DNA of 64,000 nt from Macrostomum hystrix (GCA_950097015.1 CATNEN010000002.1:6944001-7008000), one strand, 5' to 3'; positions 753 through 52,600 are shown, counted from the stretch's first letter. A program made the numbers and translations. The notes: a model not told the origin generated them from the letters alone.

Positions 753-1502
753 ACTATTTGAATTGCGGGTCTACTGTCACCAAATGATGTGTCTTCAGCC
801 CCTTTAACAGTAGACCACGGGTACCCATCTTTTTGCTCTTGAAGATTCAAAAATTTAAAGCTTCTAAAACATTAAGCGATTCCCATCGGAGTGTCTGGTG
901 GGAAGAACCACAAATATAGGCATAATATATCTGCTAACAAAATCTCATCATGTAACCATGTTAACGGTATCATTGCTAACTTCTTTGGAATGATAAAATC
1001 GTTAATATTTTAATTTCTGAACCAATATAGCTAGTAGATTCGCCAAAGAAGTTATACAGAGCAATGTTACTTATTCTTGTCACCAGGGTCTTAGACAAGA
1101 ATCGCTGAATATCTCGACGATGATTAAGTCTGACGGCTTTAAAGGTTAACTCATCGAAAAGGACGGAAATGTAGATCCCTAAATGGTGGATTTTTACGAA
1201 AAGTAAGTCATTCGGTTTGGGAGCGATCGTGAAGTAGGCATTTGGTATTTGAAATACACCCAGGGGAAAAAATGACGTGGCATTTCTACGGCTAACGAAA
1301 TGCCGAAACGTCGCTAAAGAATTTCACGTAACAGAGTCGCTTGCGGCGCTGTAGAGAAGTTTGGAGTCGCTCAAGAAGCGCTTCGGTGGTAAATAAGGCC
1401 TTTAAAACTAATTTTCAATCGTTCAAGAAACGGCGCAAGTAAAAAGCTTAAAGCGAGCAAAAAAAGACGAAGGAAGAACAAAGCAAGCGTCCCGGAACTC
1501 AC

Positions 1503-21919: not shown

Positions 21920-22561
21920 TCACACCGGGTCAACCGCTCGGTCCCACACCGTGAACTGGAAGTCCAGGCCGCCTTCGCTCTGCCTGTCGAAGCTGAACTC
22001 GGCCAGCAGGTGCTCCGGCAGGCGGTCCCGAGGCACCTGGGCGAACCGGGCCCAGTCCAGCTGGTCCGGGAAGCGGCAGTCGCCGATGCAGTTATCGTCG
22101 TAGACCCGGGTGAAGTAGATCCGGCCCAATCGTGGGTGCCTGGCAGCTTCGGCGTACACCGCCGAGCCGCCAATCACGTGAATGTCGGCGACGCTCTCGG
22201 CCAGCGGCCCGCCGGGATCGGCCAGGGCCAGAGCGGCGTCCAGACTGTCAACAGCATGGACACCGTCGGGTAGGCGCGGCTGCAGGTCGGCGGGGCTGCG
22301 CGATAACACAACGGAATAACGATTCGGCAGAGGCTTGCGGGGCAGCGAGTCCCAGGTGCGCCGGCCCATGATGATGAGGTTGCGGCGCGACAACTCCAGG
22401 AGCGACGGCGGGCCGCTGGTGACAAGGCGGAAGAACTTCAGATCGGTCTTCAGTCCGTAGCCCCAGGGCAGGCCGCCGTCGCGACCAATGACGCCATTGG
22501 TGGCGGCGGCGACTACGAGGCTGAAAGTCTTCTGATTGGCTGGCTGAATACCGGACTGCAT
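21920..22561 (-). CDS. DHFR: Dihydrofolate reductase, intronless (213 aa from ATG 22561; in-frame upstream ATG at 22624)
   Basis: Motifs LVVAAATNGVIG..LPW..DLKFF, IIMGRRTWDSLPRKPLPNR, IHVIGGSAVY, IYFTRV and GDCRFP. Confidence 0.93.
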   Translation of the reverse strand: MQSGIQPANQKTFSLVVAAATNGVIGRDGGLPWGYGLKTDLKFFRLVTSGPPSLLELSRRNLIIMGRRTWDSLPRKPLPNRYSVVLSRSPADLQPRLPDGVHAVDSLDAALALADPGGPLAESVADIHVIGGSAVYAEAARHPRLGRIYFTRVYDDNCIGDCRFPDQLDWARFAQVPRDRLPEHLLAEFSFDRQSEGGLDFQFTVWDRAVDPV

Positions 22562-22819
22562 GCTGGCTGCCTTTTGTGTGCCGTGGCTGGAGATGCGAGA
22601 GCGAAGGGCTTGAAGGTTCATCATGGACACGATTTGATCCCCAAATGTGTACACTGGTGTGTTTCCATCTATCTATCTCATTTATTCTTGATTGGTCCTG
22701 CGTGTGTGCGATTGTACACTGAGGTTGAGCGTGTTGTTACTGTTGAAGTCTGTAAAATAGGGGCTAGCAAACTATAACGGCCCACGAGACAATATAAGGC
22801 CCACATAAATATCATCTCA

Positions 22820-27590: not shown

Positions 27591-29480
27591 TCAATCGTAG
27601 GGCACGTAGCCGCAGTAAAAGCCGTGGACTCTTCTGAAGCACGGCGCCAGCTGGCCTGTGCTCTCCGCCAGCAGCAGCAGAGCCCGCATCGCCAGCTGCT
27701 CCGGCAGGCAGACGCTGCCAACCGATACATCGCGCGACCACTGGCTGAGCGCGCCAGAGAATGCCGAGTCAGCGCTAGGCAGGTACAGCAGCCGGCAGGC
27801 CTTTCGGCCGCGGCAAACCGACACCCGACTAGTAGCCGTCGACTTCTCATCGACGTCACCGTCGGGTGCAACCAGGCCGATGTCGGCGGAGTAGACTCGG
27901 CAGCGACCGTCCAGGCGCCACAGCAGAGCCACCTCCCTGGCGCCGGAGTCACTCAGCGCCATCAGGCTGGCTCGCCGAACCGCCTCGCCTTCGCCAAGTC
28001 GACGCAGCAGTCTGGCAAAGGTAGATAAGGCGAAGGCTTGGCAAAACACTACAAACACTAAATTCAAAGATCTCAGCAGTTGAAGCGTCGCTGTTCAAAT
28101 TCTAAATCTCACCCGAGTACCCCACAAAATCTCACCCCTCAGAAAGTAAGCCCTTCAAAATCTCACCCCTCAGAAAGTAAGCCCCTCAAAATCTCACCCC
28201 TCAGAAAGTAAGCCCCTCAAAATCTCAACCCTCAGAAAGTAAGCCCCTCAAAATCTCACCCCTCAGAAAGTAAGCCCTTTAAAATCTCACCCCTCAGAAA
28301 GTAAGCCCCTCAAAATCTCAATCCTCAAAAAGTAGCTCCTCAAAATCTGACCAATCGAAGAGTGACTCCAGAAAAAAAAAACTTCATCGCTCAGATTTTC
28401 GCTCTCGTAATCTTATCTCCTTAAAGTAAAATTCTTACCTACTCAAATTCTAAAAAATAACACATCCTTAAATCTATCATCAGAGATAAAAATTCACGAA
28501 CTCTCCGCATCTTCAATCCCACATTCCCTATGCAGATTGTGGAAGCGAACAAACCTCCGCAAATGGAAATCATCGTCGGTGACATCGCCGACAGCGCCGT
28601 TGGCGGACAACTCAGCCGACGCCAGCGACACGACCTCCTCGCCGACAATATCGTCATCGACGTCGCGCACATCGCGAAGCAGCCGGACTAGATCCGGAAA
28701 GAAGACGCAGGAGGCTGCGGCGCTGGCAGACGTCGAGAAGCCGACGGCGGAGCGGCATCTGGCGCACACGACCAGACCGCGGCTGACTCTGACGATGGCG
28801 TCGGACAGAATCGACGAGGCCGGCAGGGTTAGGTCGACGCCGTCGTAGCGGCACTCACCGGATCGCGGCGAAGTCGGCCCGGAATCCACCAGCTTCTTCT
28901 CGTCGGCGTGGTCGACGTGGCAGAAATAAGCGGCTGCCGCCTCGTGCAGGCAGTCGGCGCCGGACCCGGCTGCTGAGGTGCTGGCCTCCAGGACGGCGCT
29001 CAGGTCGGCAAGGCGAGCGGAACAGAAGCCGCAGAGGAGGCTGCGGGACTGCCTGAGAAGGCTGGCTGCCGCTGCCAGGCCTGCAGCTTCGCCTCGCTCA
29101 GAGTCCGTCGACACGCCGAGGCCGTCGGCAGGCCGACTGTCCAGATCGTCATCAGCCACTGCCGAGACCGAGAGTTCAACGCCGGCACCAGGCAGCGAGG
29201 GCGACTGACGCCGCAGGCCGGAGCAGGTGATGGGCTCCAGGCGAAGGCCTTCCAAGCTGACGGTGCGCCGTTGGCCATCGTCGGCTGCTAGCTCAACGGT
29301 GACGAGATTCGGCTGGCTGACCTGCAGGCAGCGAGAGCCGCCAACGGTGGCGTCATCTGAGCTGGAAGCGTGCAGGCAGAGGCTGACCTTCTTGAACGAG
29401 TAGGAGTAGATAGCGGACAGCTGAGGCGCGGCCGCACTCACCTGGGCTGCACCGGCTAGAGAATCAGCGACTGACGGCAT
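27591..29480 (-). CDS. UBE3D: E3 ubiquitin-protein ligase E3D (HECT_2 family); exons 29480-28555 and 28011-27591 (~448 aa)
   Basis: Contains CGFC, YFCH and VCARC zinc-type motifs. Exon 2 has LLWRLD..RLLYLP..WSRDVSV..LPEQL..LLLLAES..LAPCFRRVHGF, matching the UBE3D C-terminus. The phase-2 junction AG|gtttgt..tttgccag|A is in frame. Confidence 0.82.
28126..28350. repeat. 31-bp minisatellite in UBE3D intron (AAAATCTCACCCCTCAGAAAGTAAGCCCCTC)
   Basis: About 7 tandem copies. Confidence 0.9.
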
Positions 29481-30345: not shown

Positions 30346-33122
30346 TCACCGCTTCTCCAATGATTTGAACTTGGCTTCTGAAAATGTAATTCACGGGAGA
30401 GACAAAATACTGTTAATAATTGAGTGTTTGTTTCTTCTTTAAAACGGCTTAGCCTAAATTAGCCGGCAGGGTACCGACCAACTTACCAGTTCTCCTCAAT
30501 TTTTGCTTGTTAGCTATCAATCTTACTGTACATTCCGCCTTGATTTGTTCGGCAGATTACAGCTAACTCTCTCGGCAGATTCCAATCAATTAACTAAGCA
30601 AATTCTAGCTAATTATCTCGGAATATTCCGGCTAATTATCTCGGCAGATTCTAACTAACTATTTCGGCAAATTCCAACTAATTATCTCGGCAGATTCCAG
30701 CTAATTATCTCGGCAGATTCCGCCTACTTATTTCGGCAGATTCCAGCTAATTATCTAGGCAGATTCCGGCTAAATTATCTAGTCAGATTTCAAATAATTA
30801 TCTCGGCGGATTCCAGCTAATTATCTAGTCAGATTCCAGCTAGTTATCTCGGCAGATTCTAGCTTATTATCTCGGCAGATTCCAACTAATTATCTCGGCA
30901 GATTCCAGCTAATTATCTCGGCAGATTCCGCCTACTTATTTCGGCAGATTCCAGCTAATTATCTAGGCAGATTCCGGCTAAATTATCTAGTCAGATTTCA
31001 AATAATTATCTCGGCGGATTCCAGCTAATTATCTAGTCAGATTCCAGCTAGTTATCTCGGCAGATTCTAGCTTATTATCTCGGCAGATTCCAACTAATTA
31101 TCTCGGCAAATTCCAACTAATTATCTCGGCAAATTCCAACTAATTATCTAGTCAGATTCCAGCTAATTATCTAGTCAGATTCCAGCTAATTATCTCGGCA
31201 GATTCCAGCTAATTATCTCGGCAGATTCCAACTAATTATCTCGACAGACACCGGGTTGCCACAGACACTAGGGAGACCCAATGAATGACTCAGCGTTTTT
31301 AAGCAAAAAAAAAATAACTCGATACTATTACTGACTATTTCAGTAGCTAAGTGTGCGCAAATATAAGACTAGCAGTGATAACTAAAATTACACTCATACA
31401 ATATAAAGCCGTGGAAGCTCACCTAACCGCTTACTATAGGCGTCCAACCTGTAGGCAGCCTGCTCCAGCTGGGTGACACTGGCCTCCAAGTGATCCACCT
31501 GGTCCAGGTAGGGCTGCAGAGCTCGGTCTAGGGATGAAGGCAAAACACTGATGATGGAACTATGGAAACTAAAGATTTGAATTGCACGTCTGGAGGTTGG
31601 TAAAAAATAGGTAAACATAGTACAACTCAGCTTTCCTGATGACAAACGTCGGGAAACGTGCAAACTAAAAACATTATCAAACAGTCAACACAGCGCTGCT
31701 TATTAGCAATATCAAAATCTGAATGAAAAAAACTCAAATTCATGCCATTGTGAGTAAGGCATAACAACAACCCTGCACAATGCTCACATTTTTCATTGAG
31801 ATCTTCCAGACTCTTGGAGACGCCAGTCGCCACGTTGTGCATGTCGGCGTACTTCTGCGTGGCAACGCGATTCATCTCAACCAGCAGAGCGTAGTCATCG
31901 ATTGTAACTGGACAATTTGGAGATGCGGTGGGTTGGGCAGTGATTCATCTATGACCTGTTGGGTAGGGTGATGCTTGATCTATGGCCTGTTGGGTGGGTG
32001 ATGCTTGATCTACGGCCTGTTGGGTGGGTGATGCTTGATCTACGGCCTGTTGGGTGGGTGATGCTTGATCTATGGCCTGTTGGGTGGGTGATGCTTGATC
32101 TATGGCCTGTTGGGTGGGTGATGCTTGATCTATGGCCTGTTGGGTGGGTGATGCTTGATCTATGGCCTGTTGGGTGGGTGATGCTTGATCTATGGCCTGT
32201 TGGGTGGGTGATGCTTGATCTATGGCCTGTTGGGTGGGTGATGCTTGATCTATGGCCTGTTGGGTGGGTGATGCTTGATCTATGGCCTGTTGGGTGGGTG
32301 ATGCTTGATCTATGGCCTGTTGGGTGGGTGATGCTTGATCTATGGCCTGTTGGGTAGGGTGAGGCATAAACTATGGCCTGTGGGGTAGGGTGATGCTTGA
32401 TCTATGGCCTGTTGGGTAGGGTGATGCATAAACTATGGCCTGTGGGGTAGGGTGATGCTTGATCTTTAGCCTGTTGGGTAGGGTGATGCTTGATCTTTAG
32501 CCTGTTGGGTAGGGTGATGCATAAACTATGGCCTGTTGGGTAGGGTGATGTTTGATCTTTAGCCTGTTGGGTAGGGTGATGCATAAACTATGGCCTGTTG
32601 GGTAGGGTGATGCATAAACTATGGCCTGTTGGGTAGGGTGATGCATAAACTATGGTCTGTTGGGTAGGGTGATGCTTGATCTGTGGCCTGTAGAGTAATG
32701 CTTGATGTACAGAATGTGTAGGCTAATGCTTGATTTATAGACATATAGGTAGGTTGAATCTTTAATAATGGTAACATATTCTTTACATACTATGATTCAT
32801 CTACTAACTGTGACTCACTTTCCAGTTCGCCTTTAACATAGTCCGAAATGGCTTGGAATGTGTTTCTGCTGAGCTCTTCAATACTGAGCTTTCCAGCGGC
32901 TTGCAGCAGAAGGGCATCGCCAGCCTGCTCAACTGAGGTTGAGTCTGCTTGAGTCTGTGGCTGCTGCTGCTGCTGCTGCTGCTCTGTAGCCCCAGTTGTT
33001 GCAGCAACTGCAGCCATAGCAGATTCTGCCGCACTGGCCTCAGTAACAGACAAAGAATCGGCTGCAGCCACTGCTGCAGCTTCTTCCACAGCAACTGCTG
33101 CTTCTGAGTGGATTGAATCCAT
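30346..33122 (-). CDS. BLOC1S2: BLOC-1 subunit 2; exons 33122-32819, 31907-31788, 31527-31423, 30377-30346 (186 aa)
   Basis: The spliced product reads ..[82 protein letters not shown]. All junctions are GT-AG and phase-consistent. Confidence 0.92.
30540..31244. repeat. 23-bp minisatellite GCAGATTCCAGCTAATTATCTCG (BLOC1S2 intron 3)
   Basis: Tandem units are visible. Confidence 0.93.
31957..32690. repeat. 30-bp minisatellite GGTGATGCTTGATCTATGGCCTGTTGGGTG (BLOC1S2 intron 1)
   Basis: Tandem units are visible. Confidence 0.95.
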
Positions 33123-34419
33123 TTTTTCGAGGTTTGAGTTCACTGGGAACTTGTCAGCTCTCTATAAATATATAATTTTGATGAGTAAATATCATTGTAT
33201 AGTATTCATAAAGCAAGGGTTATGCAATACAAAATTGCCTTACAAGCATATTAACAGGCTCTAGAAAACGATAATTAAACTATCAATACAAAGCAGTTAA
33301 AAATATACCAAGACTAAAAAAGGAGTTAGACATCACAAAAAATTAATAACATGATGTAATGATAGAATGATGTAAATATGTTCTTTAATTATGAATACTC
33401 TATTTTAGTGGCCTCAAATGCTGTACCAGCCAGTCTAGCCCAACCACAGACTGCTAATCTATCTGCCAACCAAATTAGACCTAGATACAAGTCTTCTGTT
33501 GTATTACAGCCAGGGACCACTGTTAGTTGCATCCAAGAATGGAAAAAGTATGGTAGGTGGCCAGCACAAGGTAGCTATCTAAGACAATAGCCCTTGTCAC
33601 TTGGATAAGGCAACAAGGGTGTAACAATAGTAATAATCAACTGTACCTGGGCAATGGAAATTTCAAACTGAAAACTAAACATTCAATGAGCAAACAAGGA
33701 AAAGAAAAGCAAATAATTAACTCATATGATTAATTACTGGAAAGAAAGTGCAAAGAATCTAGCATAGCAATCATTAGGCATCAAGGCACTACAGCTGAAA
33801 CTCAAGAGTCAAAATTGAACCCTAAACAATGACTTACTAGCAATAGAGACTTACAACAGAATATGTCAACACCTTTAAAACTAGTCATTAAAAGTTAAAC
33901 TTAGATGTTAAAAGTTTAATTAACATCTTACAAGCTAACAAATTCACAAATTAACAAAAAGATTAAAAGTTTAAAGTTTAAAGTAGAAAGACCATAAAGT
34001 TGTACAAGAAATGTTTTTATAGACAATTGAACTCTATTTGTTTTTAGTTGAATCCTGGGACTGGGTCATTTTTGTCTAGAATCCTAGGATTTGAATTTGG
34101 AAAAGTTTCCATTATATGTGACCCCAAAAAAAGAATGGTAGTGCACAAAAATTCAGACTTTCTGATTTGCCATAGTTAGTCTGAATAATGCTAGGTGCCC
34201 ATCAGAAAAAAGGAATTGGAAAGCTTGAGTGGATGTTGAAAATTATTTTTTTACATGCTTTGAGGTTAAAAAAATGAATATTGCAGGCCAGAAAAGTTTC
34301 TTAGTTTTATAATTTAATTAAGTTTAATGTCTATAGAGTATAGCTTTATATCTATAACTGACAATCCGTCAATGTCATAGAAATGCCCATCTTTCAACCT
34401 GCATGCTAATATAAAAAAT

Positions 34420-35132
34420 AATAATAGTTGCAGGAGGGCTGCTGACAATGGTACATAAATTAGTGACACTGGACCCACAGCCAGCAAGAAGGCTATTTTG
34501 CCCATTTCGCTGACTCCTGAGCACACACATAGACACAAAGACACATGGTTTTTTGTGTGAGTTGGGTGCAACTTGCACCCCAAAATCCTGATTTGCACCT
34601 AAATTTTGGGAATCAGATACAAATCTTACACTGGTTGAGATGCAAATGCAATTTTAAAATTCTTATTAAAAAAATAAATTATAATAAATTGTACTTATAA
34701 AGGATTTTTTGTATTTTGAATCTGTTTCATTCAGTTTGTTTCATTTCAAATGTTTTTTCAGCTTTAAATGTTTCAGTTTGTTAGGCTTTAGGACTTTAGG
34801 CTGTATTTTATAAACCACATGATTCAAATCAGCATGCACCAATGAAAATCTAATAAATACTTGTTTTTTTTTATCTAATGCAAAAACCTGCTAGCAAAGA
34901 CTTTGGGATTCACAGAGAACTTTTGGTCAAAGTAATATATATAAAGGTCCTTGTGCTGAAGAAAAACATTTTAAATTGGCAGGCTTGATAAAAATTGCAT
35001 GAAAAGCCCCCAAGCCTTCTCTCTCCTCTGCACCCCATACAAATGTGGGCCTCACCATAGAATTAAACTCATGCAGGGACTGTGCTGTGGTGCAAAAGGC
35101 AGACACATTAACCACTCTGCGACCAACCCCAA
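34420..35132 (-). mobile_element. tRNA-SINE copy split by a CAGG-ended MITE (~34544-34890)
   Basis: The SINE 3' part (34420-34540) and 5' head (34990-35132) match the 8411 copy. The insert resembles the 40682 element (TGCACC-rich, AAAAACCTG end). Confidence 0.7.
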
Positions 35133-35647: not shown

Positions 35648-36457
35648 ATGAATCAGCAACAATTCCGTGGACACACCATCAATACTCAAGGACGTTTTGT
35701 TAACGGAATCATGAGAGGTCAAGAAGTTTCCTTTTTGCTGGATACCGGAGCCGGATACAACTTCCTTAGTCCGACTTTGTGGAAGCAGATTTTCAACGAC
35801 GAAGAAATCCAAGCCCCAAGTCGTCTAGTGACCGCATTCGACGGGTCAAGTATCTCCATCCGAGGCGAGGTCCTGGCTAAGTTCACCCTGGACAAATCCG
35901 AAATCGAGACTCTATTCCTGCTGTGCAACAACCAGAGCGACAACATTCTCGGCATGGATTTCTTCCTGAATTTCTGCTCAACGTTTAATTTCAGTCCTAT
36001 GTATGAATCGTTGGGCATAATTGACGACGAGCACGACTTTGTCTTCGTGAAATTGCACAGCTCGCAGTTCCCGTCAGTTCAGGCTGCATTGGCGATGCCA
36101 GACTACTCAGGTTATCAGCAGATGATCAGTGAGCTCATTGAAGCCCAAGGCGACTTCATCATCAGGGATGTGATGTCCGACATCCAGCTCTACATGAAGA
36201 AAATCGCCTACCTGAAGTTGGACCGGCAGCTGCCGCAGCGAAAGGAATTATCTGAAGCCGTCAAGAACCTGCGCAGCTACTTTAACACGGACCAGAGTGT
36301 TGCCATCCTCCTTGGCGCTGCCGATGAAGTGCACGAGATTATCCAGGCCGAAAGTCAGGTAGCAAATCGCGACTTGCTCAATATTGAGTTCAGATGGCTC
36401 TTCTCTCAGATAGGATGGCCCTCTTATCACGATCTGCCTAACCCGTGCTCTTTTTGA
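35648..36457 (+). CDS. Stand-alone retropepsin-like aspartic protease + unknown C-terminal helical domain, paralogue A (269 aa)
   Basis: Intact ORF with FLLDTGAGYNFL and NILGMDF (clan AA retropepsin motifs). TATATAA lies about 95 bp upstream and AATAAA about 250 bp downstream. No gag, RT or LTR is adjacent. Confidence 0.85.
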   Translation: MNQQQFRGHTINTQGRFVNGIMRGQEVSFLLDTGAGYNFLSPTLWKQIFNDEEIQAPSRLVTAFDGSSISIRGEVLAKFTLDKSEIETLFLLCNNQSDNILGMDFFLNFCSTFNFSPMYESLGIIDDEHDFVFVKLHSSQFPSVQAALAMPDYSGYQQMISELIEAQGDFIIRDVMSDIQLYMKKIAYLKLDRQLPQRKELSEAVKNLRSYFNTDQSVAILLGAADEVHEIIQAESQVANRDLLNIEFRWLFSQIGWPSYHDLPNPCSF

Positions 36458-37382
36458 ACAACTTTTATCCTTGTGACGATGGTTATCGTTTTTTCGTGCA
36501 ATGCTAAATTAGGCTAGACCTAGTCAACATATTTCACAATTTTATCACTGCCTTTCATCCGATTTTGACGCATTTAGTGTACTAGCACTTGTAGTAGGCC
36601 CTAGGCCTAGTTGCCTATGATCTGAAACGTGTTTTTGTACAGTCAGTCAAATGTTCATTTTACGCATCACCAGCTCACCAGTTTAGTCTACGCCAAACAT
36701 TTAGCTAATAAAAAAATCTAAAATATGCTCGTGAAATGTGCTATTTTCGTACTTGTATTTAATGCTTGCTAAACTGCCAGGCATTTGCTAGCCAACTTTT
36801 ATGTGAACTTTTTTAATCAATATAATACACGTGGCATAGGCCCTACTGTGCATGTGCACTGTTCGCTGTTTGATCATTGAGTCTGGCTGACCAGAAATCG
36901 ATCAAGGTTTACTTAGGTAGTGTGTGAACAGTTTCTGAGAACTTTTAAGAGTATATAAAAAATGAAACTTAAAAAGTTAATAAACCAAATATTGTCGCTT
37001 AAGAGGGCTGCTTTAGCAATACAAAGGTTGCGAGAAATCTGGCAGTGTTCTGACAGAAAACGGCTGCCCGTGAGGCAAGTGCTCGCTATATTTATGGAAT
37101 TAAATTTGCAGTTTACATAGAGAAAACTAATATACATTACAATTTATTCAGCAAGGACTAAAACAATTACAAATACATTTCCAGTATAATTTGACAAGGA
37201 CGTGTGAATTAACTGAGAAGTTCCCAAGTTTTTCATTGCAGTACAAAAATATGTAACTACAGTACTCTTTTTTAAAGCTACTGCACAATACAAACTGTAG
37301 GCCTACAAACTGATTAGAGAAAAGCGAACAGAAGCTGCACTTTAGCGTGCAATTTGCAGTAGAGGCAGCACGTTTAGAAACT

Positions 37383-37483
37383 TTATTCACACTGGTCTTC
37401 TTGTGCGCCTTCACATTCCGGCAGTGTGTACTTTTCGCTGTCTTCGTCCTTGGACGCCATCACCAGGTTGTCGTGGCGCTCCT
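37383..37483 (-). other. Diverged duplicate of the last ERM exon (candidate alternative terminal exon)
   Basis: Acceptor ccttcag|AG GAG CGC CAC GAC AAC CTG versus ccttag|AG GAG CGC AAC TAC AAC CTG at 43954. Further identity includes GCCGG(A/G)ATGTGAAGGC. The phase-1 frame is open to a TAA overlapped by AATAAA. Confidence 0.6.
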
Positions 37484-37694
37484 CTGAAGGTTTGGGATTC
37501 TTTGAGTGTTAATGAGGCTGTTTCTGTGGAATCAAATAGCATATCATGTAAATATAGGAGACACATTGTTGAAGACTAGATTAACGTTTGAGTTCTACTC
37601 ATGGGGTGACATATATGTACTTCGGGTTCCTGTTAATGGATTGCTTAATAAGACCTGGAGTTCCAATTCATGGTTTGCTGGATAAAGAAAAGAG

Positions 37695-38470
37695 TGTAAC
37701 TGGTATTAAAAAAATTGTAACTGGTACTGGAACAAGATTGTAACTGGTACTGGAACAAGAGTGCAACTGGTATTGGAACAAGAGTGCAACTGGTATTGGA
37801 ACAAGAGTGTAACTGGTACTGGAACAAGAGTGTAACTGGTACTGGAACAAGAGTGCAACTGGTACTGGAACAAGAGTGCAACTGATATTGGAACAAGAGT
37901 GCAACTGGTACTGGAACAAGAGTGTAACTGGTACTGGAACAAGAGTGCAACTGATATTGGAACAAGAGTGCAACTGGTACTGGAACAAGAGTGTAACTGG
38001 TATTGGAACAAGAGTGCAACTGATATTGGAACAAGAGTGTAACTGGTACTGGAACAAGAGTGTAACTGGTACTGGAACAAGAGTGTAACTGATATTGGAA
38101 CAAGAGTGTAACTGGTATTGGAACAAGAGTGCAACTGGTACTGGAACAAGAGTGTAACTGGTACTGGAACAAGAGTGTAACTGGTACTGGAACAAGAGTG
38201 TAACTGGTACTGGAACAAGAGTGTAACTGGTACTGGAACAAGAGTGTAACTGATATTGGAACAAGAGTGTAACTGGTATTGGAACAAGAGTGCAACTGGT
38301 ACTGGAACAAGAGTGTAACTAGTACTGGAACAAGAGTGTAACTGGTACTGGAACAAGAGTGTAACTGGTACTGGAACAAGAGTGTAACTGGTACTGGAAC
38401 AAGAGTGTAACTGATATTGGAACAAGAGTGTAACTGGTATTTGAACAAGCCTAACTGGTATTGGAACAAG
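37695..38470. repeat. 23-bp minisatellite AAGAGTGTAACTGGTACTGGAAC
   Basis: Tandem units; the ORFs here repeat every 23 aa (3 units). Confidence 0.95.
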
Positions 38471-39029
38471 ACTAACTAGACTGCAACAATTGAAAAAAAT
38501 ACTATATTAAAGTGTCTGAACAAATGTTGCTCTTAGTGGGATAAGAAAGTCACGATTTTATTTCACATCTGAGTAAGAAGGTGTTATTGTTTAGGTGAGA
38601 AATTGAGAATATGCTCAAACTAAACTTGGCATGTTGGCCAAAATTTCGCACCTCGAATATTACGCAAAAATACACGGGGTAACAAAAACCAACAATGGAC
38701 CCGACTGAGCACGTTGGACCGTGATGCATTCAGGGTTTCGACAAACTTATAGTCTACAAAACCTAAATGATAACAAATCGCACAATGCAGATTGTGTAAA
38801 TTCCCTGCAGGCCTAGATTTGAGACCTAAGAATAAATTTAGTAGACAGCAAGTTTGTCTGATATAAGAAGTTTGATAAGTTTGATCTGGCGCATACTGAT
38901 AGCAGAGGACTGCGCAATACTCACAATTCTCATTGGGATCAGTTTCAGTCCCGGGACAGGGGGGTTGCTGGCACCCATTTTGCAGCTTTAATTTGGCAAT
39001 TTGGAATTTTGCTTTAATAGTTGCAAATC

Positions 39030-39116
39030 GGCTTAACAGAAATAGTTGAGTTTCTCCTGTTTGGAGCAGCAGAGCGTCGCCAACCGACTCAACTGGGGTT
39101 GAGTCTGCTTGAGTCT
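39030..39116 (-). pseudogene. Duplicated fragment of BLOC1S2 exon 1
   Basis: Translates TQADSTPVESVGDALLLQ versus TQADSTSVEQAGDALLLQ at ~32905-32958. Confidence 0.75.
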
Positions 39117-40681
39117 AAGCAAGAAATGACATATTAATTATGCATGAAATTGCAATAAATCTAAGCGATAGTGAATAAAAAATCTAACACTTAAATCAAG
39201 TTAAAAAAAGAACTAATATAATTATATCAATAATGGCATGAGTACTAGCAACAGGCGTGTATCTTTTAAAAAGTGTCCAAATAATATATCCTTCCTACAA
39301 ACTCATAATGTTCATGTATGTATTGAAAAAATTCACTATCTTTATGTATAAAAGGAGCGACTAGTCATTTTAAGACATAACTTGCTGGTTAACGTCTTTC
39401 TAAAAGAAATAAGGCATAACTGAAGCATTATGCCTAGAAGTTTGTATCATTAAAAAACTCTTTAATCTTTACTCTTTACTCGTTAGTCGAAAGTCATGGT
39501 GTGCCCTGAGGAACTGTGAGGTTAATACCAGTAGAAGCTTTGGACAGTGACAACTTGTGCCAGAGAGCGAGACGCTACTATAGTAAGAATATTTAAAACG
39601 GCCCTTCTCAGGGCCACCGATATCTAAAATTAGGTCAAGACTAGGTCAAGTCAAGTACATTGGAAAAGGCAAGCAGGACTCTGCTTAGCAATTAGCAATG
39701 GACAACGCTTGTGCTAGGAAGAAGAGCCACCACAGAGAATATTATTAATGATGTAAGCCACTTGATTACTGGTTGAACTGAAGCAATGTAGATTTAAGTG
39801 TCTTCCTTGATCGAAACAGTGAAGTCGCAACTTGAGCCATGGACCTTCAAGTCGTGAGTCAGACACTGTAGCCATCATTCCATCATTTTTTAAATTAGTA
39901 TTTTCTGTTAGAGGCCTTAGCCATCTATAATGTGTTATTAAGGTATAAGCGATATAATTAGACAGATAATTTCCAGTAGTGCGTGCTATTTGCTCAAGGT
40001 ATCATTGTATATAATAGCACAAACCACTGTGTACTCACATCCTAACCCAATGTCCCTGATCTGCCCATTGGACTGACAGTGAACACTATATTAGTATATC
40101 TTTTGTTCCTCATTTAGTTTCAGTTGCAGAAAAAATAACTTATTTATTTATTTATATATAATATAAATATAATTCCAGACAGAATAGACAGACATAATTC
40201 CAGACCATGAAGATAGGAATTGGAATTAGCTAAATTATTGTTGTCTATAATTCCTTTTCTCAATATTCTAATAGACCTACATTTTGGTTAAGAGTCAATT
40301 ATTTTCACGCTAAACACAATAATTAATAGTAATATTATCAACCAACCTTTCAATTAGTATTTAATATTATTTAGGATTATAAAAGCTAGATATACCCAAT
40401 TATATAGTCAAGTTTATATCTTATGAAAGTACAAAGTATCTCGTATCTAGTAGAATGTAGTATAATTTTATAGCTAATCTAAAAATAAAACATTTTTTCA
40501 GCTAGGAGTTTCATTTTAGCAGGTACAAAAAGTATATATAATTAAAATATTCAAATGCACTTAAAGCTTAACAAAGTACCCAATACTGCACATGAAGATA
40601 TGATAAAAGACAACACAGTGTTATAAACTGAAAAGGTATGAATCTAAAATGTCTAGCAACTAGCTTTGATGATGTCGTGAC

Positions 40682-41010
40682 CAGGTTTTTTTATGCAAAT
40701 AGGGTGTAATTTACACCCTGAAATTTGGATTTGCACCCACTTTTTTGGCACTGGATGCAGCTCGTGCATCTGCATTTTTTAGATCAAGATGCATGCAAGT
40801 CATTTTTTAGCAAAAGTTACAAACAAAACATCATGTATAAATATATTGTATATAATGAAACAATAAGATAATTAATTATTCATCCCAACAAAATTCGCAA
40901 ATTTAGACCTTGATGCAAGTTGCATCCATACTTCATATTTTTCAGATTTGCATCCATTTTTTAAGCTTGACATGCAAGCTTGCATCCACATTTTTGGCAG
41001 AAAAACCCTG
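40682..41010. mobile_element. hAT-type MITE upstream of retropepsin B
   Basis: Ends CAGGTTTTT / AAAAACCCTG and 8-bp TSD GTCGTGAC / GTAGTGAC. Confidence 0.78.
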
Positions 41011-41241
41011 GTAGTGACACGTGCGAATACGCGATGTCTTAGAAATACCTAACAGTTGAATTTGTGCGAGAAATTTTTAACTTTGTTATAATGATTTGTC
41101 CCTTTGTTATACTTCATACTAGGGTGCGTATATATACGAGTTCACTTACTTTAGTAAAAGCACCAGAACCAGCTCGGAAACTCTGCTCTCGCTGAATAGA
41201 AAAGCCATAGCTTGTATACGCAACGTGTGACTCTTTAGAGA

Positions 41242-42036
41242 ATGGAGCAGCAGCCAGTAAATCGAGGTCGTACCTTAACTCAAGGTCGATTTGTAACCGC
41301 AGTAATGCGAGGACAAGAAGTCATTTTCATGCTAGATACCGGTGCTGGATACAACTTCCTAAGCTCCAGTCTATGGAGGCGTATTTTTAACGAAGAAGAA
41401 ATCAAGGCCCCAAGTCGCCGAGTGACCGCATTCGACGGGTCAAGCGTCTCCATACAAGGCGAGGTCCTGGCGAAGTTTACCCTAGACGAAGCCGAAATCG
41501 AGACAAAATTCATGCTGTGCAACATCGACTGCGACAACATTCTCGGCATGGATTTCTTCCTGGCCTTTTGCGACAGCATCAACTTTATCGCCGGATTGCT
41601 GGACCTGAACGGTGGTGGGCACCACATTCAGATGCACAGCACGCGGTACCGGTCCACACAAGCTAGCTCACTGATGCCAGACTACTCAGGTTATCAGCAG
41701 GTCATTAGCGATCTCATCAAGGTTCACGGGGACCTGATCAAGGACATGATGTTCGCCATCGGGCTCTACATTAAGAACGTCGCCTACGTGAATTTCGAAC
41801 GGGAGCTGCCGCAGCGCGACGAATTGTCGGCCACCATTCGGAGCATGCGCAACCGGTTGAGCATGGACGAGTGCGTCGCCATCCTGCTTGGCGTCGGCGA
41901 GCAAATCCACCAGATCATTCTGGCTGAGAATCAGGTAGAGCCCAGTCTCACCATGCTGAATATTGAATTTAGATGGCTGTTTAATGAATTTGGATGGCCC
42001 TATTATCGCGAGTTGCCAAACCCGTGCAGTTATTGA
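41242..42036 (+). CDS. Stand-alone retropepsin-like aspartic protease + unknown C-terminal helical domain, paralogue B (264 aa)
   Basis: Intact ORF with FMLDTGAGYNFL and NILGMDF, collinear with paralogue A down to the terminal LPNPCS(Y/F). TATATATA lies about 110 bp upstream. Confidence 0.85.
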   Translation: MEQQPVNRGRTLTQGRFVTAVMRGQEVIFMLDTGAGYNFLSSSLWRRIFNEEEIKAPSRRVTAFDGSSVSIQGEVLAKFTLDEAEIETKFMLCNIDCDNILGMDFFLAFCDSINFIAGLLDLNGGGHHIQMHSTRYRSTQASSLMPDYSGYQQVISDLIKVHGDLIKDMMFAIGLYIKNVAYVNFERELPQRDELSATIRSMRNRLSMDECVAILLGVGEQIHQIILAENQVEPSLTMLNIEFRWLFNEFGWPYYRELPNPCSY

Positions 42037-43679: not shown

Positions 43680-46600
43680 TCACATGGACTCAAACTCGTC
43701 GATCCTCTTCTTAGTGTTGCCCATGCGGATCTTCTGTAGGGTGCGGAATTTCGACCTGCCCTCGCGCACGTTGCTCTCGTGGATTTTGTCTATGGGCTGA
43801 ACCCGGTCCTCGTGCCTGGCCGAGCGGAACTGGTCGCGCATCTGGTCCAGGCGAGCCTTCACATCCCGGCTGTGCATGTACTCCTCGCGGTAGTCAGCCC
43901 TTGGCACCGTCTCCTCGCCGTTTTGAAAAGTCTCCAGGTTGTAGTTGCGCTCCTCTAAGGGATAATTTGGGATTTTTGTTCATGGGTTGCTGGATAAAGA
44001 CAGGTTTTTTGCTCATGGGTTGCTGGATAAAGACTGTTCTTTCTAAATAGATAGAAATTCTCGAAGTAAGCAATGAATTTGTCGATCGGGATTAAAATCA
44101 TTCTAAGAAATTTCGAAAATGAAAAAAGACAATTTTCACCCAAAGATAATCATCACATGCTCAAGCCACCAGTAAATATTAAGATGAGTAAAGCAAGCAC
44201 CAAAATTGTGTAAATGTAATTCGTAACAGCAAAAGGTGAAGATTTCCAGGTGCCTAATTGAAAGGACACTCCTGCACCAGCGACTGCAAACACCTGAGAC
44301 TGTCGATAGGCTGCCGCTACTGGAGTGCGACTCGGTCCTTGTGGCAGCTCGGCTGGCGTTCACGCTGGAAGCCCTCTGAGGTTGTACTTTAATTTTAGGG
44401 AAAGAGTCGCATTGGACTGTGAAATCTGCACGATGCATATCTGGATAATCCCACTCATCTAGGGGGTCAGTGGCAGAGCGGTTAACGCCTTTGCCTCTCG
44501 CACCAAGGTCCATGAGCTCGATTCCGCGGCGAGGCCGCATTCATTTGGGGCGCAGCCGCAGCCGAGAGAAGGCTTTGGGGGCTTGTCGTGCAATTGACGC
44601 CCTTGAGGGCCAACTTCCAAGGCACAGTGAAATGAACAAATGAGAAAGTCAGGGCGGTTGTACACATCTGTGTGAGTGTGTGCTCAGGAGTCAGCGAAGT
44701 CAGCAGAATTGCCTCCTCGCTGGCTGCGTGTCTAGTGTCACTGTGTAATGACCATTGCCCACAGCCCTCCTGCAAAAATTATTATTGTCCTATTTATAAG
44801 CCAATCATCCGAGCACGTCAGCAAAGCTCACTCTGTGGCTCGTCGTCCAGCTCTCGCAGATGATGTTGGGTCATTGGTGCCATCATCGAGTGCTGCTGCT
44901 GCTGCGGCTGCGGCTGCGGCTGCGGCTGGGGCTTCGCTGCTAAGGCGTGGTTCGCGCGTCTGGGCTGCACGGATGGCTCTGCTGAGGCGACCGGCTGCTG
45001 ATGCTGCTGTCGACGAGCAGCGGCCTGCTCCTGCTGGCTGCGCATTGCCCTCAGCTCCTCGGCGGCCTGTCGCGCCTCGTCTTCGCGAGAGGCCACCAGC
45101 GCCTGGGCGCGTCGGTTCTCCTCTTCAAGGCGGCGTCGCTCCTCCTGTTGGCAACCGGTGTTTGCGAGGGTTTTATGGTCACAAAATACAGGTGAGATTA
45201 TAAATTTACTACTTGCCCCACTGTCATTAGTTTGTTTGTCATTTCCTGAAAGTGCTTATAAGTGGGAACCTTCAACTGGCCATTTTAGCATCTTTATTTA
45301 TTTTCGATAACTGCTTTCGTGTTTTAAGCGTGCTACTGTTAGTAGAGCAAGATGAAACGTTTAGAAAATGTTCTGCTTTTCAAATTGGCTAACAGAAAGA
45401 TCGTAGACTAATGGGTGAACTCGCACACCTGACTGAGCTGCGCCTCGGATTCCAGCCTCAGCCTGATCTCCTCGACGCGAGCCCTGGCCGTCTCCAGTTC
45501 GTCGCGCTGCCGCTGAATGTCTTCCATCTGGCGCTCCATGTCGGCCAGCTGGCTCGCCCGCTCCTCTCTCTCATTGTTCATGCCGGCCTGCAGGCGCTCG
45601 AGCTCGTGCACCCGGTCCTCCAGCTCGCGGCGTCGAGCTTCAGCAGCTTCGCGGGCCGCACGTTCGCGTTCGAGACTGATCCTGTGCAATTTTGGGGAAG
45701 GGGGTAGGGGAAGCTCGAATTGTTACTGCGGTTTATAGTGGTTTATTGTTGTTTATAGTTTTTCATCGTGGTTTATTGTTGTTTATCGTGGTTTATTGTT
45801 GTTTATCGTGGTTTATTGTTGTTTATCGTGGTTTATTGTTGTTTATCGTGGTTTATTATTGTTTATCGTGGTTTATTGTTTTTATCGTGTTTTATTTTTG
45901 TTTATCGTGGTTTATTGTTTTTATCGTGTTTTATTTTTGTTTATCGTGTTTTATTGTTGTTTATCGCGTTTTATTGTTGTTTATCGTGTTTTATTGTTGT
46001 TTATCGCGTTTTATTGTTGTTTATCGTGTTTTATTTTTGTTTGTCGTGCTTTATTGTTGTTTATCGTGCTTTATTGTTGTTTATCGTGTTTTATTTTTGT
46101 TTGTCGTGCTTTATTGTTGTTTATCGTGCTTTATTGTTGTTTATCGTGTTTTATTTTTGTTTGTCGTGCTTTATTGTTGTTTATCGTGCTTTATTTTTGT
46201 TTATCGTGTTTTATTGTTGTTTATCGCGTTTTATTGTTGTTTATCGTGTTTTATTTTTGTTTGTCGTGCTTTATTGTTGTTTGTCGTGCTTTATTGTTGT
46301 TTATCGTGTTTTATTTTTGTTTGTCGTGCTTTATTGTTGTTTATCGTGCTTTATTGTTGTTTATCGTGGTTTATTATGGTTTATCGAGGTATATCTTAGT
46401 GGATTCAGGTCAGAGCTTCGGAATGCGGGCTTACAAGAGAGAATTGTTTCCTTTAGAAAGGCACCTTATTGCCCACTGCTTTATTTAAATGGTGCCAGCA
46501 TTAGCTGGGGTAGAAAGGGCACCCAAGTCGATGGACTGAATAGCCTGAGTACTAAACATTAGTCTTTGTATTCGCCTCGCTTCGCCCAACCGGGTCAGGG

Positions 46601-49600: not shown

Positions 49601-52600
49601 CAGACGCAACACCCACAGCAACCCAAACTGGACCTGGGACAACCTGTACTTGTTCTGCACAGTTCGGTTCAGTTCAGGATATTTTATGCCCATATATGCC
49701 CACTGGGTTAAGCCCGCAGCCCGGATACCTGTGTGCCTACTGCTCACCTGTCCTGTTTTATCACCTGTCCGTGTCTCACCCTTTTCTAAGGTCGCCATAG
49801 GGTCGTCGGATTCACCCTTCCACAAGGTCCTTGGATTCACCCTTTCCCAAGGTCATTTGATTCACCCTTCCCCAAGGTCATTTGATTCACCCTTCGCCAA
49901 GGTCATTTGATTCACCCTTCCCCAAGGTCATTTGATTCACCCTTCCCCAAGGTCATTTGATTCACCCTTCGCCAAGGTCATTTGATTCACCCTTCCCCAA
50001 GGTCATTTGATTCACCCTTCCCCAAGGTCATCGGTGCATTTTGACCCGCGAGAAAGTCCTCTGGATAATTGGCCATCAGTTCTCAGCAGAGTGCTTAAAA
50101 TTTTTTTTCAATTCAATGTTAGCTATAAAATATATACATATATATATATTCCCAGCTGATTAGCTGCAAGTACAACTATTTAGGAAAAAGCTTTACTATG
50201 CTCACCTCACAAAAGCAGACTTTGAGAGGCCTGGAGAGTTTCTTGACTTCTGCCGCCAAGAAAAGCGATTTTTTTGTTGATTCAGACCTCAAATTTAGTC
50301 CAGGAGTTGGGAGAAGAAATGAGAAAATGAGGAATTTTCGGTAAATTCAAAACTAAGCGAAGATCTGTGGCGTGAGTAGAAATTCTTCTAGTCTTAGAAG
50401 TTATGGCAGTCCTATAATTAAACAGTATTTGTCGGTTACAACCGATCATAGAGCTTGAGTTGGTCCTATGGGCCACATGTACAACCAGTTGTACAGCGCT
50501 TCCAAGCCTGTGTACAGCTGTTCAGTCCGTGGACTGCCGGGTCAACTGGCTTGCTCAAAGACTAATGGTCCAGCCAAATGTGTCCATCACGTCGCGAGAA
50601 CACACTCACAGGTGATAATTAGCATGAGCAGTTTCTCTCCGCAGGTTAATTAGCATACAACAGTGTCATTACAGCGACATTTGCACGGAGGAAGTAACTA
50701 TATAAATGTTTTAATTAGACTCCTCTTAAGTTCTCTCAAATTGGACATCCTGTGCCTTGCCTTACCTGAACTCTCTTACGCACGTGTGTGTGTGTTTTTG
50801 TGCTAAAAAAACTCCATTTCAATTTGCCCTAATATGAGACTAGCCTTTATGAGCTTAAAGCATGCTTATATATGACCATCAATTAACAATTGAAGCGGTA
50901 ACAAAATCACCGTTCTCCGGTAATTTACATGTACTTTAAAAATAGCTTACCCCACTTAAGCTCCACATTATTGTATTTTTCGTTGTCTTCGTCGTTTAAA
51001 AAATATTTTTAGGTTATCAATAGCATCAACCTGTCAATTAGTCTAGTCTCAGATAAATGTCACCCTGCCATTCACACAGCTTCAGATTAATGTCACCCTG
51101 CCATTCATACAGCTTCAGATTAATGTCACCCTGCCATTCACACAGCTTCAGATTAATGTCACACTGCCATTCATACAGCTTCAGATTAATGTCACCCTGC
51201 CATTCATACAGCTTCAGATTAATGTCACCCTGCCATTCACACAGCTTCAGATTAATGTCACTCTGCCATTCACACAGCTTCAGATTAATGTCACTCTGCC
51301 ATTCACACAGCTTCAGATTAATGTCACTCTGCCATTCACACAGCTTCAGATTAATGTCACTCTGCCATTCACACAGCTTCAGATTAATGTCACTCTGCCA
51401 TTCATATGGCATCAGTGAAATGCCACTCTGCCATCCAGACAGCTTCAGAGAAATGTCACTCTGCCATCCAGACAGCTTCAGAGAAATGTCACTCAGCCAT
51501 CCAGACAGCTTCAGAGAAATGTCACTCTGCCATCCAGACAGCTTCAGAGAAATGTCACTCTGCCATTCACATGGCATCAGTGAAATGTCACTCTGCCATC
51601 CAGACAGCTTCAGATTAATGTCACTCTGCCATCCAGACAGTTCAGAGAAATGTCACTCTGCCAAGTTAAAAGTGCACATGCACACTTCCTCACCTCTCGT
51701 GCTGCCTACTGGCGCGGTCCTCCTTGGCCTGCGCTTTCATCTGCTGCACCTCGATGGTGTCCGGCTTACGGCGGCGCATGTACAGCTCGTGGTTGCCCAT
51801 GCACAGAGCCAGGATGCGCTTGTTGATGCGCAGCCGCGGGGCGAAGAAAATGAAATCCTGCGACGGCGGTGAGGAGAGGAAATCCCTGTTACAGAACGAA
51901 GGGAATCCCTGCTGGAGAATGAAGGGAATCCCTGCTGGAGAATGAAGGGAATCCCTGCTGGAGAATGAAGGGAATCCCTGCTGGAGAATGAAGGGAATCC
52001 CTTCTACAGAACGATGGAAATCCCTGCTACAGAACGACGGGAATCCCTTCTACAGAACAAAGGTAATCCCTGCTACAGAACGAAGGGAATCCATACTGGA
52101 GAACGAAGGAAATCCCTGCTAGGAAGCGAAGGGAATCCATGCAAGAGAACGAAGGAAATCTGTGTTAGAGAATAAAGGGAATTTCTGCTACAGAACGAAG
52201 GGAATCCCTACTACAGAACGATGGGAATCCCTTCTACAGAACGAAGGTAATCCCTGCTACAGAACGAAGGGAATCCCTGCTACAGAACGACGGGAATCCC
52301 CTCTACAGAACGATGGGAATCCCTGCTACAGAACGAAGGGAATCCATACTGGAGAACGAAGGAAATCCCTGCTAGGGAGCGAAGGGAATCCATGCAAGAG
52401 AACGAAGGAAATCTATATTAGAGAATAAAGGGAATTCCTGCTACAGAACGAAGGGAATCCCTACTACAGAACGATGGGAATCCCTGCTACAGAACGATGG
52501 GAATCCCTGGAGAACGAAGGGAATCCATGCTTGAGAACGAAGTGAGTCTCTGTTAGAGAATGGAGGGAATCCCTGCTGGAGTATAAAGGAAATCTCTGCT

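Follow-up and report, generated by a model that had tools for sequence, protein, structure and literature searches.

Few host genes keep a retroelement protease (DDI1/2, ASPRV1, NRIP2/3, and PEG10/RTL1), and one of these, ASPRV1, acts via a flanked, self-processing precursor. Retroelement-derived restriction factors include mouse Fv1, sheep enJS56A1 Gag, and p22, a truncated Gag of yeast Ty1. To our knowledge, no domesticated protease has been described that joins an accessory-protein domain of the same element. Macrostomum is a flatworm genus used as a transgenic regeneration model. The window, that is, the whole stretch of 64,000 nucleotides from Macrostomum hystrix analysed here (GCA_950097015.1 CATNEN010000002.1:6944001-7008000), holds a pair of genes that appear to combine these two kinds of domain.

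An earlier note on this DNA had reported two plus-strand open reading frames (ORFs) of 269 and 264 amino acids, open and collinear, and both were recovered. They are referred to as A and B, and their features are the following:

35648..36457 (stop codon included), plus strand: gene A, a 269-amino-acid chimera of protease (PR), linker, and C-terminal domain (CTD), by ORF scan, alignment, and Pfam
35687..35998, plus strand: retropepsin domain of A, residues ~14-117, with D32-T-G-A and I100-L-G-M-D-F, by Pfam, element homology, and AlphaFold2 (AF2)
35999..36094, plus strand: linker of A with the fusion junction, residues ~118-149, by pLDDT <50 and homology limits
36095..36454, plus strand: ORF3-type CTD of A, residues 150-269, five helices and an ordered C-terminal extension, by element ORF3 homology and AF2
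41242..42036 (stop codon included), plus strand: gene B, a 264-amino-acid paralogue with the architecture of A, by ORF scan, alignment, and Pfam
41278..41592, plus strand: retropepsin domain of B, residues ~13-117, with D32-T-G-A and ILGMDF, by Pfam and element homology
41593..41673, plus strand: linker of B with the junction, residues ~118-144, by A/B alignment and homology limits
41674..42033, plus strand: ORF3-type CTD of B, residues 145-264, by element ORF3 homology

The two genes lie ~5.6 kb apart in the same orientation. Their products align collinearly from end to end (58% identity, 77% positives), with a 5-amino-acid indel in the linker, which in A is predicted by AF2 to be disordered (pLDDT <50). 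A stop codon stands in frame two codons 5' of each ATG (TAA in A, TAG in B).

By motif, profile, and predicted fold, the first half of each protein is a retropepsin (peptidase family A2). LLDTGAG, with the catalytic D32, and ILGMDF occur in both copies, and the Pfam families Asp_protease_2 and gag-asp_proteas match residues ~19-106 above their gathering cut-offs, with scores of 36.4 (cut-off 24.3) and 33.6 (cut-off 28.2) for A, and 30.5 and 30.0 for B. Foldseek pairs the AF2 model of the protease domain (pLDDT ~90) with the DDI1 RVP, EIAV, and HIV proteases (probability 1.0, TM-score on the target 0.6-0.73). The best fold match is the DDI1 RVP domain, while the best PDB sequence match is ASPRV1 (E 1e-4). 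The protease of A is 50-52% identical to the pol protease of the Ty3/gypsy elements in this genome. The assignment of a Gypsy-type protease in the earlier note is upheld by the retained DTGA and ILGMDF motifs, the Pfam matches, and the ~50% identity to element pol proteases.

Many young Ty3/gypsy elements (Metaviridae) of this genome and of Macrostomum lignano carry a third gene, ORF3, between pol and the 3' LTR, and no description of it was found in the literature searched. Four whole elements have the layout LTR, gag, pol (PR-RT-RH-IN), ORF3, LTR, with LTRs of 590-860 bp that are 97.5-100% identical. At its N-terminus the ORF3 protein has an acidic helix; its other parts are an NLS-like motif, a long disordered stretch, and a five-helix end domain predicted with confidence. 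This last domain, the CTD, is constrained in the elements (dN/dS 0.04-0.10).

The second half of A and B corresponds to this CTD. The tail of A shares 29-41% identity with the C-terminal ends of ORF3 proteins from the elements and aligns to their full conserved CTD, collinearly over ~115 amino acids, with E-values down to 1e-17 in this genome and 1e-16 against M. lignano proteins. The invariant ORF3 columns P-Q-R, E-x-x-W, and P-x-x-C-x-F(end) are present in both copies, and of 15 ORF3-conserved CTD positions, 13 are kept in A and 11 in B. Both carry W202S, at a position where 90% of element ORF3s keep the Trp. Homology to pol ends at about residue 116 in A and at residue 125 in B, and homology to ORF3 begins at ~142. 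On these alignments, the tail is the CTD of ORF3 from the same Ty3/gypsy elements, and not an orphan host domain.

The motifs quoted for the tail in the earlier note (PDYSGYQQ, LPQR, NIEFRWLF, GWP.Y, LPNPCS) are common to A and B, and its apparent helicity agrees with the AF2 prediction (helical at pLDDT 88-98; the tail-only model is a confident five-helix bundle with an ordered C-terminal extension, pLDDT 92.4, pTM 0.86). The idea that the tail is an unrecognised, possibly regulatory host module fails, as it matches the ORF3 CTD of at least 60 LTR-flanked elements here, and of M. lignano. Nor is a death fold, a six-helix Greek-key bundle, supported: the model has five helices plus an extension, no death, CARD, pyrin, or DED domain is among the matches listed, and Pfam gave no match.

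Searches for a relative of the domain outside the elements were negative. Pfam returned no match for the tail of A or B, nor for three ORF3 proteins; PHROGs had none for the tail/ORF3 domain; and when a profile built from 23 CTDs was run on PDB sequences, the best E was 0.22, which is not meaningful. With the tail model as query, Foldseek against the PDB gave generic helical matches (best E 1.1, top 47 listed), VIA-align against 48,161 chains gave generic helical bundles (best Z 7.5, KaiA and 2S albumin, top 50 listed), and BFVD gave no convincing match (best E 0.56). The ESM Atlas held no usable match for the tail of A. It did pair an element CTD with the Basidiomycota families DUF6532/DUF6698 (0.93-0.94), a kinship set aside as chance on the basis of few shared features and no Pfam support. 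Nor is the CTD a Gag duplicate (hhalign of the CTD profile against element Gag, probability 0.1).

The halves are common in this genome and the fusion is not. Residues 14-117 match ~70 pol frames (970-1,600 amino acids, 35-52% identity), and residues 157-269 match ~60 separate frames (160-520 amino acids, 28-39% identity) that lie 3.7-5.7 kb downstream of the protease-matching pol frames on the same strand. In 220 Mb, the fused architecture has only two full-length matches, A and B, and the junction segment occurs in these two alone. The many LTR-flanked copies that the earlier note regarded as the sign of an active mobile element exist for either half taken alone; the fusion has no such copies. 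Among 1.84 billion representative proteins in protein libraries, none combines protease and CTD, a weak negative with this as the only flatworm genome searched. Word-based protein searches were blank for the whole of A, for its residues 150-269, and for an alignment of A, B, and ORF3 (the last probably swamped by low-complexity words), as were exact-sequence look-ups for A and B.

Nothing else of an element was detected around the pair. No similarity to gag, RT, RNase H, or integrase was found beside A or B or elsewhere in the window, and tblastn of gag, pol, and ORF3 from the four elements against the window matched only the protease and CTD inside the two genes. No LTR-like direct repeats bounding A or B were found, and the element LTRs gave nothing beyond a 25-nt chance match in the 30-47 kb region. 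Similarity between A and B ends exactly at the ORF limits, and their flanks align no better than shuffled sequence (upstream z 0.35, downstream z 2.4). Both observations of the earlier note, that neither gene has gag, RT, or LTR next to it and that the flanks have diverged beyond alignment, are in keeping with these searches. With Ty3/gypsy elements that have a third ORF, A and B have in common the protease motifs DTGA and ILGM(D/E)F and the C-terminal motifs LPQR, IE.RW, and LP.PC.F (protease 50-54% identical to their pol protease, tail 29-41% to their ORF3 CTD). Unlike the elements, they lack LTRs, gag, RT, RNase H, integrase, and the N-terminal region of ORF3, and carry the modules in one 265-amino-acid frame that exists twice only. 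They are also old (dS 0.79) and have host-like codons, whereas the LTRs of the elements are near-identical.

Comparison of A with B gives a dN/dS of 0.33 (CI 0.22-0.46; Fisher p 7e-11) at the dS of 0.79, with 0.19 for the protease, 0.66 for the linker, and 0.43 for the CTD. By this measure the pair evolves under purifying selection, as the earlier note had proposed, with both frames open at that divergence. The constraint on the CTD is much looser than in the elements, which, together with W202S, could mean a relaxed function. GC3 is 0.63-0.65 in the two genes, amid flanks with a GC of 0.32-0.39; an element protease has a GC3 of 0.37 where their protease part has 0.56-0.57. By codon log-likelihood ratio, A and B lie within the range of host genes and beyond that of element pol. 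They group as sisters in trees of both the CTD (98/97) and the protease (83/57), and the latter tree places their protease half inside the same element clade; built from 26 ORF3 and 10 distinct protease sequences, these trees are unrooted, with an unresolved backbone, and fix neither donor family nor age.

Protease and tail both come from one type of element, and A and B are therefore chimeras of two of its non-adjacent parts. We read them, with a probability of about 0.6, as a tandem pair of host-retained (domesticated) chimeras made from two non-adjacent pieces of a three-ORF Ty3/gypsy LTR retrotransposon. The data establish the descent of both halves from these elements, a single origin of the fusion, and the maintenance of both open copies under purifying selection while their flanks decayed. 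The lineage-specific domesticated family envisaged in the earlier note fits the stand-alone genes, the two-copy fusion, and the dN/dS of 0.33.

Such a gene probably arose in a single element copy, where a template switch or an internal deletion joined the complete pol protease domain in frame to the complete ORF3 CTD. This step would have removed ~4.5 kb, comprising RT, RNase H, integrase, and the disordered N-terminal part of ORF3. The LTRs, the leader of pol, and the gag region would have been lost or have decayed, and the start codon now stands where the protease domain begins. The chimera would then have been duplicated in tandem; as the flanks cannot be aligned, this duplication, with copies ~5.6 kb apart, is inferred from adjacency and orientation. 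The catalytic Asp and ILGMD are kept, so dimers of the retropepsin (A-A, B-B, or A-B) should form an active aspartic protease; a flexible linker connects the domain to the five-helix module. Because the module retains the invariant residues of the accessory protein, its binding partner is probably that of ORF3.

Alternatively, A and B could be what remains of the coding part of a low-copy, non-autonomous LTR family, an internally deleted gypsy that retains protease and CTD and is mobilised in trans; they would stem from two independent insertions that diverged while selection acted on the element. We consider this improbable, even though both halves are element proteins and internal-deletion derivatives are common here: one deleted element that retains ORF3 (L035) shares its LTR with a full-length copy, and gag+ORF3 elements that lack pol occur in M. 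lignano. With separate insertions of such a rare lineage, part of the low dN/dS of the pair would reflect selection at the level of the element. Yet just these two copies exist in 220 Mb, side by side and on the same strand, neither is bounded by LTR-like repeats, and the region has no element LTR match. Their similarity also stops at the ORF ends, whereas related element copies would share UTR and LTR too; their codon usage has shifted away from that of the elements; and the active families have 97.5-100% identical LTRs, unlike these old copies.

The chance that the frames are decaying relics, open by accident and without function, seems slight. No orthologue of A or B was found in the protein libraries searched, CTD constraint is looser than in the elements, and one truncated stand-alone CTD relic occurs in M. 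lignano, all of which would suit relics. Against this, when neutral substitution was simulated at the A/B divergence (indels not counted), one copy was still open in only 4 of 10,000 runs, and here both are open; both domains have a dN/dS significantly lower than 1, catalytic residues and conserved CTD residues are retained, and the ORFs are GC-rich islands amid AT-rich flanks. Hardly more credible is a reversed direction for the tail, in which a host gene for the helical domain is ancestral and was captured by gypsy as ORF3, with A and B descending from the donor after gaining a protease. Capture of host domains is known for LTR elements, and the unrooted CTD tree, with its unresolved backbone, places A and B on their own deep branch. 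Two events (capture and a separate protease fusion) would nevertheless be needed in place of one deletion, the protease half falls inside the same element clade, the CTD occurs in many diverged element families of two species, where it invariably forms the end of ORF3, and no protease-free host homologue was found except the truncated relic.

As domesticated chimeras, A and B resemble the domesticated animal retropepsins (ASPRV1/SASPase, DDI1/DDI2, NRIP2/NRIP3, and the PEG10/RTL1 protease; PMC11402058, PMC3406341) in placing a single retroelement-type retropepsin domain in a host gene. They lack the UBL and UBA domains of DDI1/2 (Pfam) and the gag of PEG10/RTL1. ASPRV1, which works through a flanked precursor, offers a further likeness as the best PDB sequence match, but its type of flanks is absent and the match is only E 1e-4. 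The partner domain sets A and B apart from all of these, being a retroelement accessory-protein module. A and B are far closer to the elements of their own genome (~50%) than to the known domesticated retropepsins, and would therefore represent an independent, much younger domestication. If expressed, the pair would show, in compact and recent form, two non-adjacent transposon modules assembled into a new gene.

The likeliest role would be that of a protease, or a protease-shaped decoy, carried by the CTD to complexes of parent elements that are still active, and such targeting would make A and B regulators or restrictors of these elements. A fuller version of this idea, which is speculative and on balance unlikely, casts them as host restriction factors assembled out of pieces of the parasite itself: their ORF3-derived domain, which would be a new fold among retroelement accessory proteins, would bring them to the assembly or nuclear-import complexes of active ORF3-bearing gypsy elements, where the protease would either cut element proteins at a wrong moment or pair with the element protease in dead heterodimers. 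Fv1, enJS56A1, and p22 are similar in the proposed logic only, in that part of an element protein, retained by the host or truncated, keeps the interaction surfaces of its parent and interferes with relatives. They are Gag-derived, whereas A and B consist of a protease and an accessory-protein domain, and here interference is only proposed. The pair also draws attention to ORF3, a third gene under strong constraint in gypsy elements active in flatworms, and a CTD-tethered protease could offer a direct experimental handle on what ORF3 binds.

Two further features of the surroundings were considered and discounted. The sole repeat flanking the pair (34417-35130 versus 44463-44786, inverted), a candidate for LTRs or TIRs, belongs to a short repeat that is abundant and dispersed, with candidate sites numbering at least 1,371. 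The TATA-like element that the earlier note saw at each gene does exist but carries little weight as promoter evidence, as the AT-rich stretch at 33-44 kb has many such strings: the window holds 61 TATAWAWR matches, about half of them within it.

Two intronless ORFs, A and B, lie on the plus strand of the window, where the earlier note had placed them, and both reading frames were confirmed:

35648-36457 (+): gene A, ORF of 269 aa
41242-42036 (+): gene B, ORF of 264 aa

The two proteins align from end to end with 58% identity and 77% positives, interrupted by a single 5-aa indel mid-protein. Pfam assigns Asp_protease_2 and gag-asp_proteas to residues ~19-106, both above gathering scores, and leaves the rest of each protein without a match. 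A and B share the motifs LLDTGAG (containing D32) and ILGMDF, and the nearest solved protein by sequence is ASPRV1 (E 1e-4). Because an in-frame stop precedes the ATG by two codons in both genes, the N-terminus is defined, barring splicing.

The halves of these proteins have separate relatives in the 220-Mb assembly, where only A and B match A over its full length. Residues 14-117 of A are 35-52% identical to ~70 long pol frames (970-1,600 aa), while residues ~157-269 are 28-39% identical to ~60 other, shorter frames (160-520 aa), located on the same strand 3.7-5.7 kb downstream of the protease match. These frames belong to Ty3/gypsy LTR retrotransposons whose third gene, ORF3, lies between pol and the 3' LTR. 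In both A and B the tail aligns across the entire C-terminal domain (CTD) of ORF3, and tblastn of gag, pol and ORF3 from four elements found matches in the 64-kb window nowhere but in the protease and CTD of these two genes. Consequently, the tail, which the earlier note left unrecognised, is the terminal domain of the accessory protein that the same retroelement encodes, and a new host-type module finds no support. In A, homology to pol stops near residue 116 and homology to ORF3 begins near residue 142; in B the corresponding residues are about 125 and 138. This places the junction within a ~12-25-residue stretch of the linker. A and B are chimeric derivatives of a three-ORF gypsy element and join two modules ~4.5 kb apart in the parent. 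The fusion probably occurred by internal deletion or template switching within one element copy.

Four whole elements each have the organisation LTR-gag-pol-ORF3-LTR, and the one measured is about 8.3 kb long. Their LTRs span 590-860 bp and are 97.5-100% identical within pairs, so the families are young. The gag carries a CCHC knuckle, and pol has the domain order PR-RT-RNase H-integrase, as in the Ty3/gypsy type. An apparent exception to the element order, with ORF3 5' of pol, proved to be an internally deleted element of 3.7 kb sharing an LTR with a full-length copy (L035:2408-6418). This is one of the head-to-tail, LTR-sharing arrays, and another carries four ORF3 matches at a 6,162-bp period (G000:C38:33129701-33148453).

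ORF3 encodes ~220-320 aa in the four elements, and other families reach ~365 aa. It begins with a short, acidic, Leu-rich conserved helix. After this come a conserved Pro/Arg motif, an NLS-like KRPR..SP, a disordered, low-complexity region of some length rich in Pro, Gln and Ser, and lastly the conserved CTD of ~115 aa, which extends to the final residue in nearly all families read. Examples of this layout include L031:3940-4605(-), L032:4075-4947(-), L033:3986-4861(-) and L053:950-1891(+), among others. ORF3 has no Pfam match, no counterpart was found in Pfam, the PDB or the literature, and neither a signal peptide nor a membrane segment is obvious in the sequences by eye. The layout resembles that of accessory proteins that act as shuttles or adaptors. 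As a gene of the elements, ORF3 is real and under constraint; dN/dS of its CTD between diverged element copies is 0.04-0.10.

Among public sequences, the element proteins have their closest relatives in the Macrostomum lignano assembly GCA_002269645.1 (PMC5730564). Three M. lignano elements (L042:6958-10270, L043:7522-11047 and L044:7525-11047) have a partial gag and, 2-3 kb further on, ORF3; the interval between the two shows no match to protease or RT. They are non-autonomous derivatives that retain ORF3.

An AlphaFold2 model of A, built on a 26-sequence alignment, is confident for the protease domain (pLDDT about 90) and very confident for the tail (pLDDT 88-98), while the linker between them (residues 113-147) is disordered, with pLDDT < 50. 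The protease model matches the RVP domains of DDI1 and the EIAV and HIV proteases with probability 1.0. Modelled alone, the tail (pLDDT 92.4, pTM 0.86) is predicted to form five helices and an ordered C-terminal extension. It has no convincing relative: the best match was E 1.1 by Foldseek against the PDB, E 0.56 against BFVD, and Z 7.5 (KaiA, 2S albumin) by VIA-align against 48,161 chains, a level that the tool's own notes describe as generic among helical bundles. A death fold, suggested earlier from the tail's size, thus finds no support, as no death-fold protein occurs among the matches listed. Element CTDs have 15 positions with conservation of at least 85%; 13 of these are retained in A and 11 in B, and one conserved Trp is Ser in both (W202S).

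A and B are sisters in trees of the CTD (support 98/97, stem length 0.78) and of the protease (83/57); both trees place the pair among the element families, with an unresolved backbone. An 84-aa probe spanning the junction matches A and B alone genome-wide. Similarity between the two loci is confined to the interval from ATG through stop codon, and beyond it, over 400 nt to each side, the alignment does not exceed what shuffling produces. No direct repeats enclose A or B, and the region holds no match to an element LTR. A and B stem from a single fusion event and have lost all mobility features. Tandem duplication of the fused gene would have produced the two copies, and we infer that they are a host gene pair.

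Divergence between A and B (dS 0.79, dN 0.26) was partitioned by domain:

dN/dS between A and B (Nei-Gojobori, bootstrap CI)
Whole gene: 0.33 (CI 0.22-0.46)
Protease: 0.19 (CI 0.10-0.34)
Linker: 0.66 (CI not estimated)
CTD: 0.43 (CI 0.24-0.74)

Changes are commoner at synonymous than at non-synonymous sites (Fisher p 7e-11). In a neutral simulation of the same divergence, with substitutions only, a single copy was still open in 0.04% of runs; both A and B are open. Purifying selection has kept both reading frames over the long term, and, within the reach of this sequence analysis, the earlier proposal of a domesticated protease under such selection is supported. The CTD is less constrained in A and B (0.43) than in the elements (0.04-0.10), which fits either an arms race or a relaxed function.

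A and B form GC-rich islands: their GC is 0.49-0.51 and their GC3 0.63-0.65, whereas the flanks have a GC of 0.32-0.39. GC3 of the protease part is 0.56-0.57, compared with 0.37 in one element's protease and 0.39-0.44 across element pol. The log-likelihood ratio of host versus element codon usage for the protease parts (A +0.03, B -0.03 per codon) falls inside the range from -0.03 to +0.31 that four host genes nearby define, whereas an element protease scores -0.26. Since the host range rests on four genes, this argument is supportive, not decisive.

The domain boundaries in A and B are clean: each protein contains the protease and the CTD in full, joined by a flexible linker, and both functional cores are kept, which argues that both modules are in use. 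In the mechanism we prefer, the protease part would dimerise and the CTD would bind whatever ORF3 binds, which would bring A and B to complexes of still-active parent elements. This mechanism is speculative and drawn by analogy with element-derived restriction factors.

Among 1.84 billion representative proteins, none combines the protease and CTD, and the tail has only four matches. Three come from M. lignano: two are ORF3s, and one is a stand-alone, truncated relic of 118 aa. The fourth is on a Logan contig carrying pol-ORF3-gag. Word-based protein searches gave no match. In the literature searched on Macrostomum LTR elements and domesticated retropepsins, no description of ORF3 or of a protease-CTD fusion was found; A and B are a transposon-derived gene type whose architecture we have not seen described. 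The 118-aa M. lignano frame mentioned above (L065:8001-8357, NIVC01000846.1) resembles the ORF3 CTD and stops before the C-terminal GWPYY..PC.F motif. Its neighbours are a peroxiredoxin gene on one side and a cystatin-like gene on the other; the surroundings contain no further parts of an element, so the frame may represent an independent second relic or a co-opted piece.

The window is otherwise ordinary gene-rich host DNA with long single-exon frames. The five named host genes are all on the strand opposite to A and B:

1371-4412 (-): SET/AWS methyltransferase, long single frame
13164-14375 (-): protein kinase, long single frame
18019-20946 (-): ionotropic glutamate receptor, long single frame
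21920-22654 (-): DHFR, long single frame
28494-29480 (-): HECT_2-like protein, long single frame
32000-32691: minisatellite, 30-bp unit
37690-38471: minisatellite, 23-bp unit, between A and B
45732-46386: minisatellite, 20-bp unit

Two further intact ORFs, 51057-51872(+) (271 aa) and 60013-61347(+) (444 aa), resemble neither A nor B and are unmatched in Pfam. A repeat pair (34417-35130 and, inverted, 44463-44786) brackets A and B. Both are copies of a short repeat scattered through the genome, where 1,371 or more candidate sites exist, and the pair is therefore unrelated to the two genes. This repeat consists of two conserved ~120-nt blocks, usually spaced about 120 nt apart, and within one copy the stretch at ~35080-35130 looks tRNA-like by eye. 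The 23-bp array yields spurious minus-strand ORFs of 198-274 aa.
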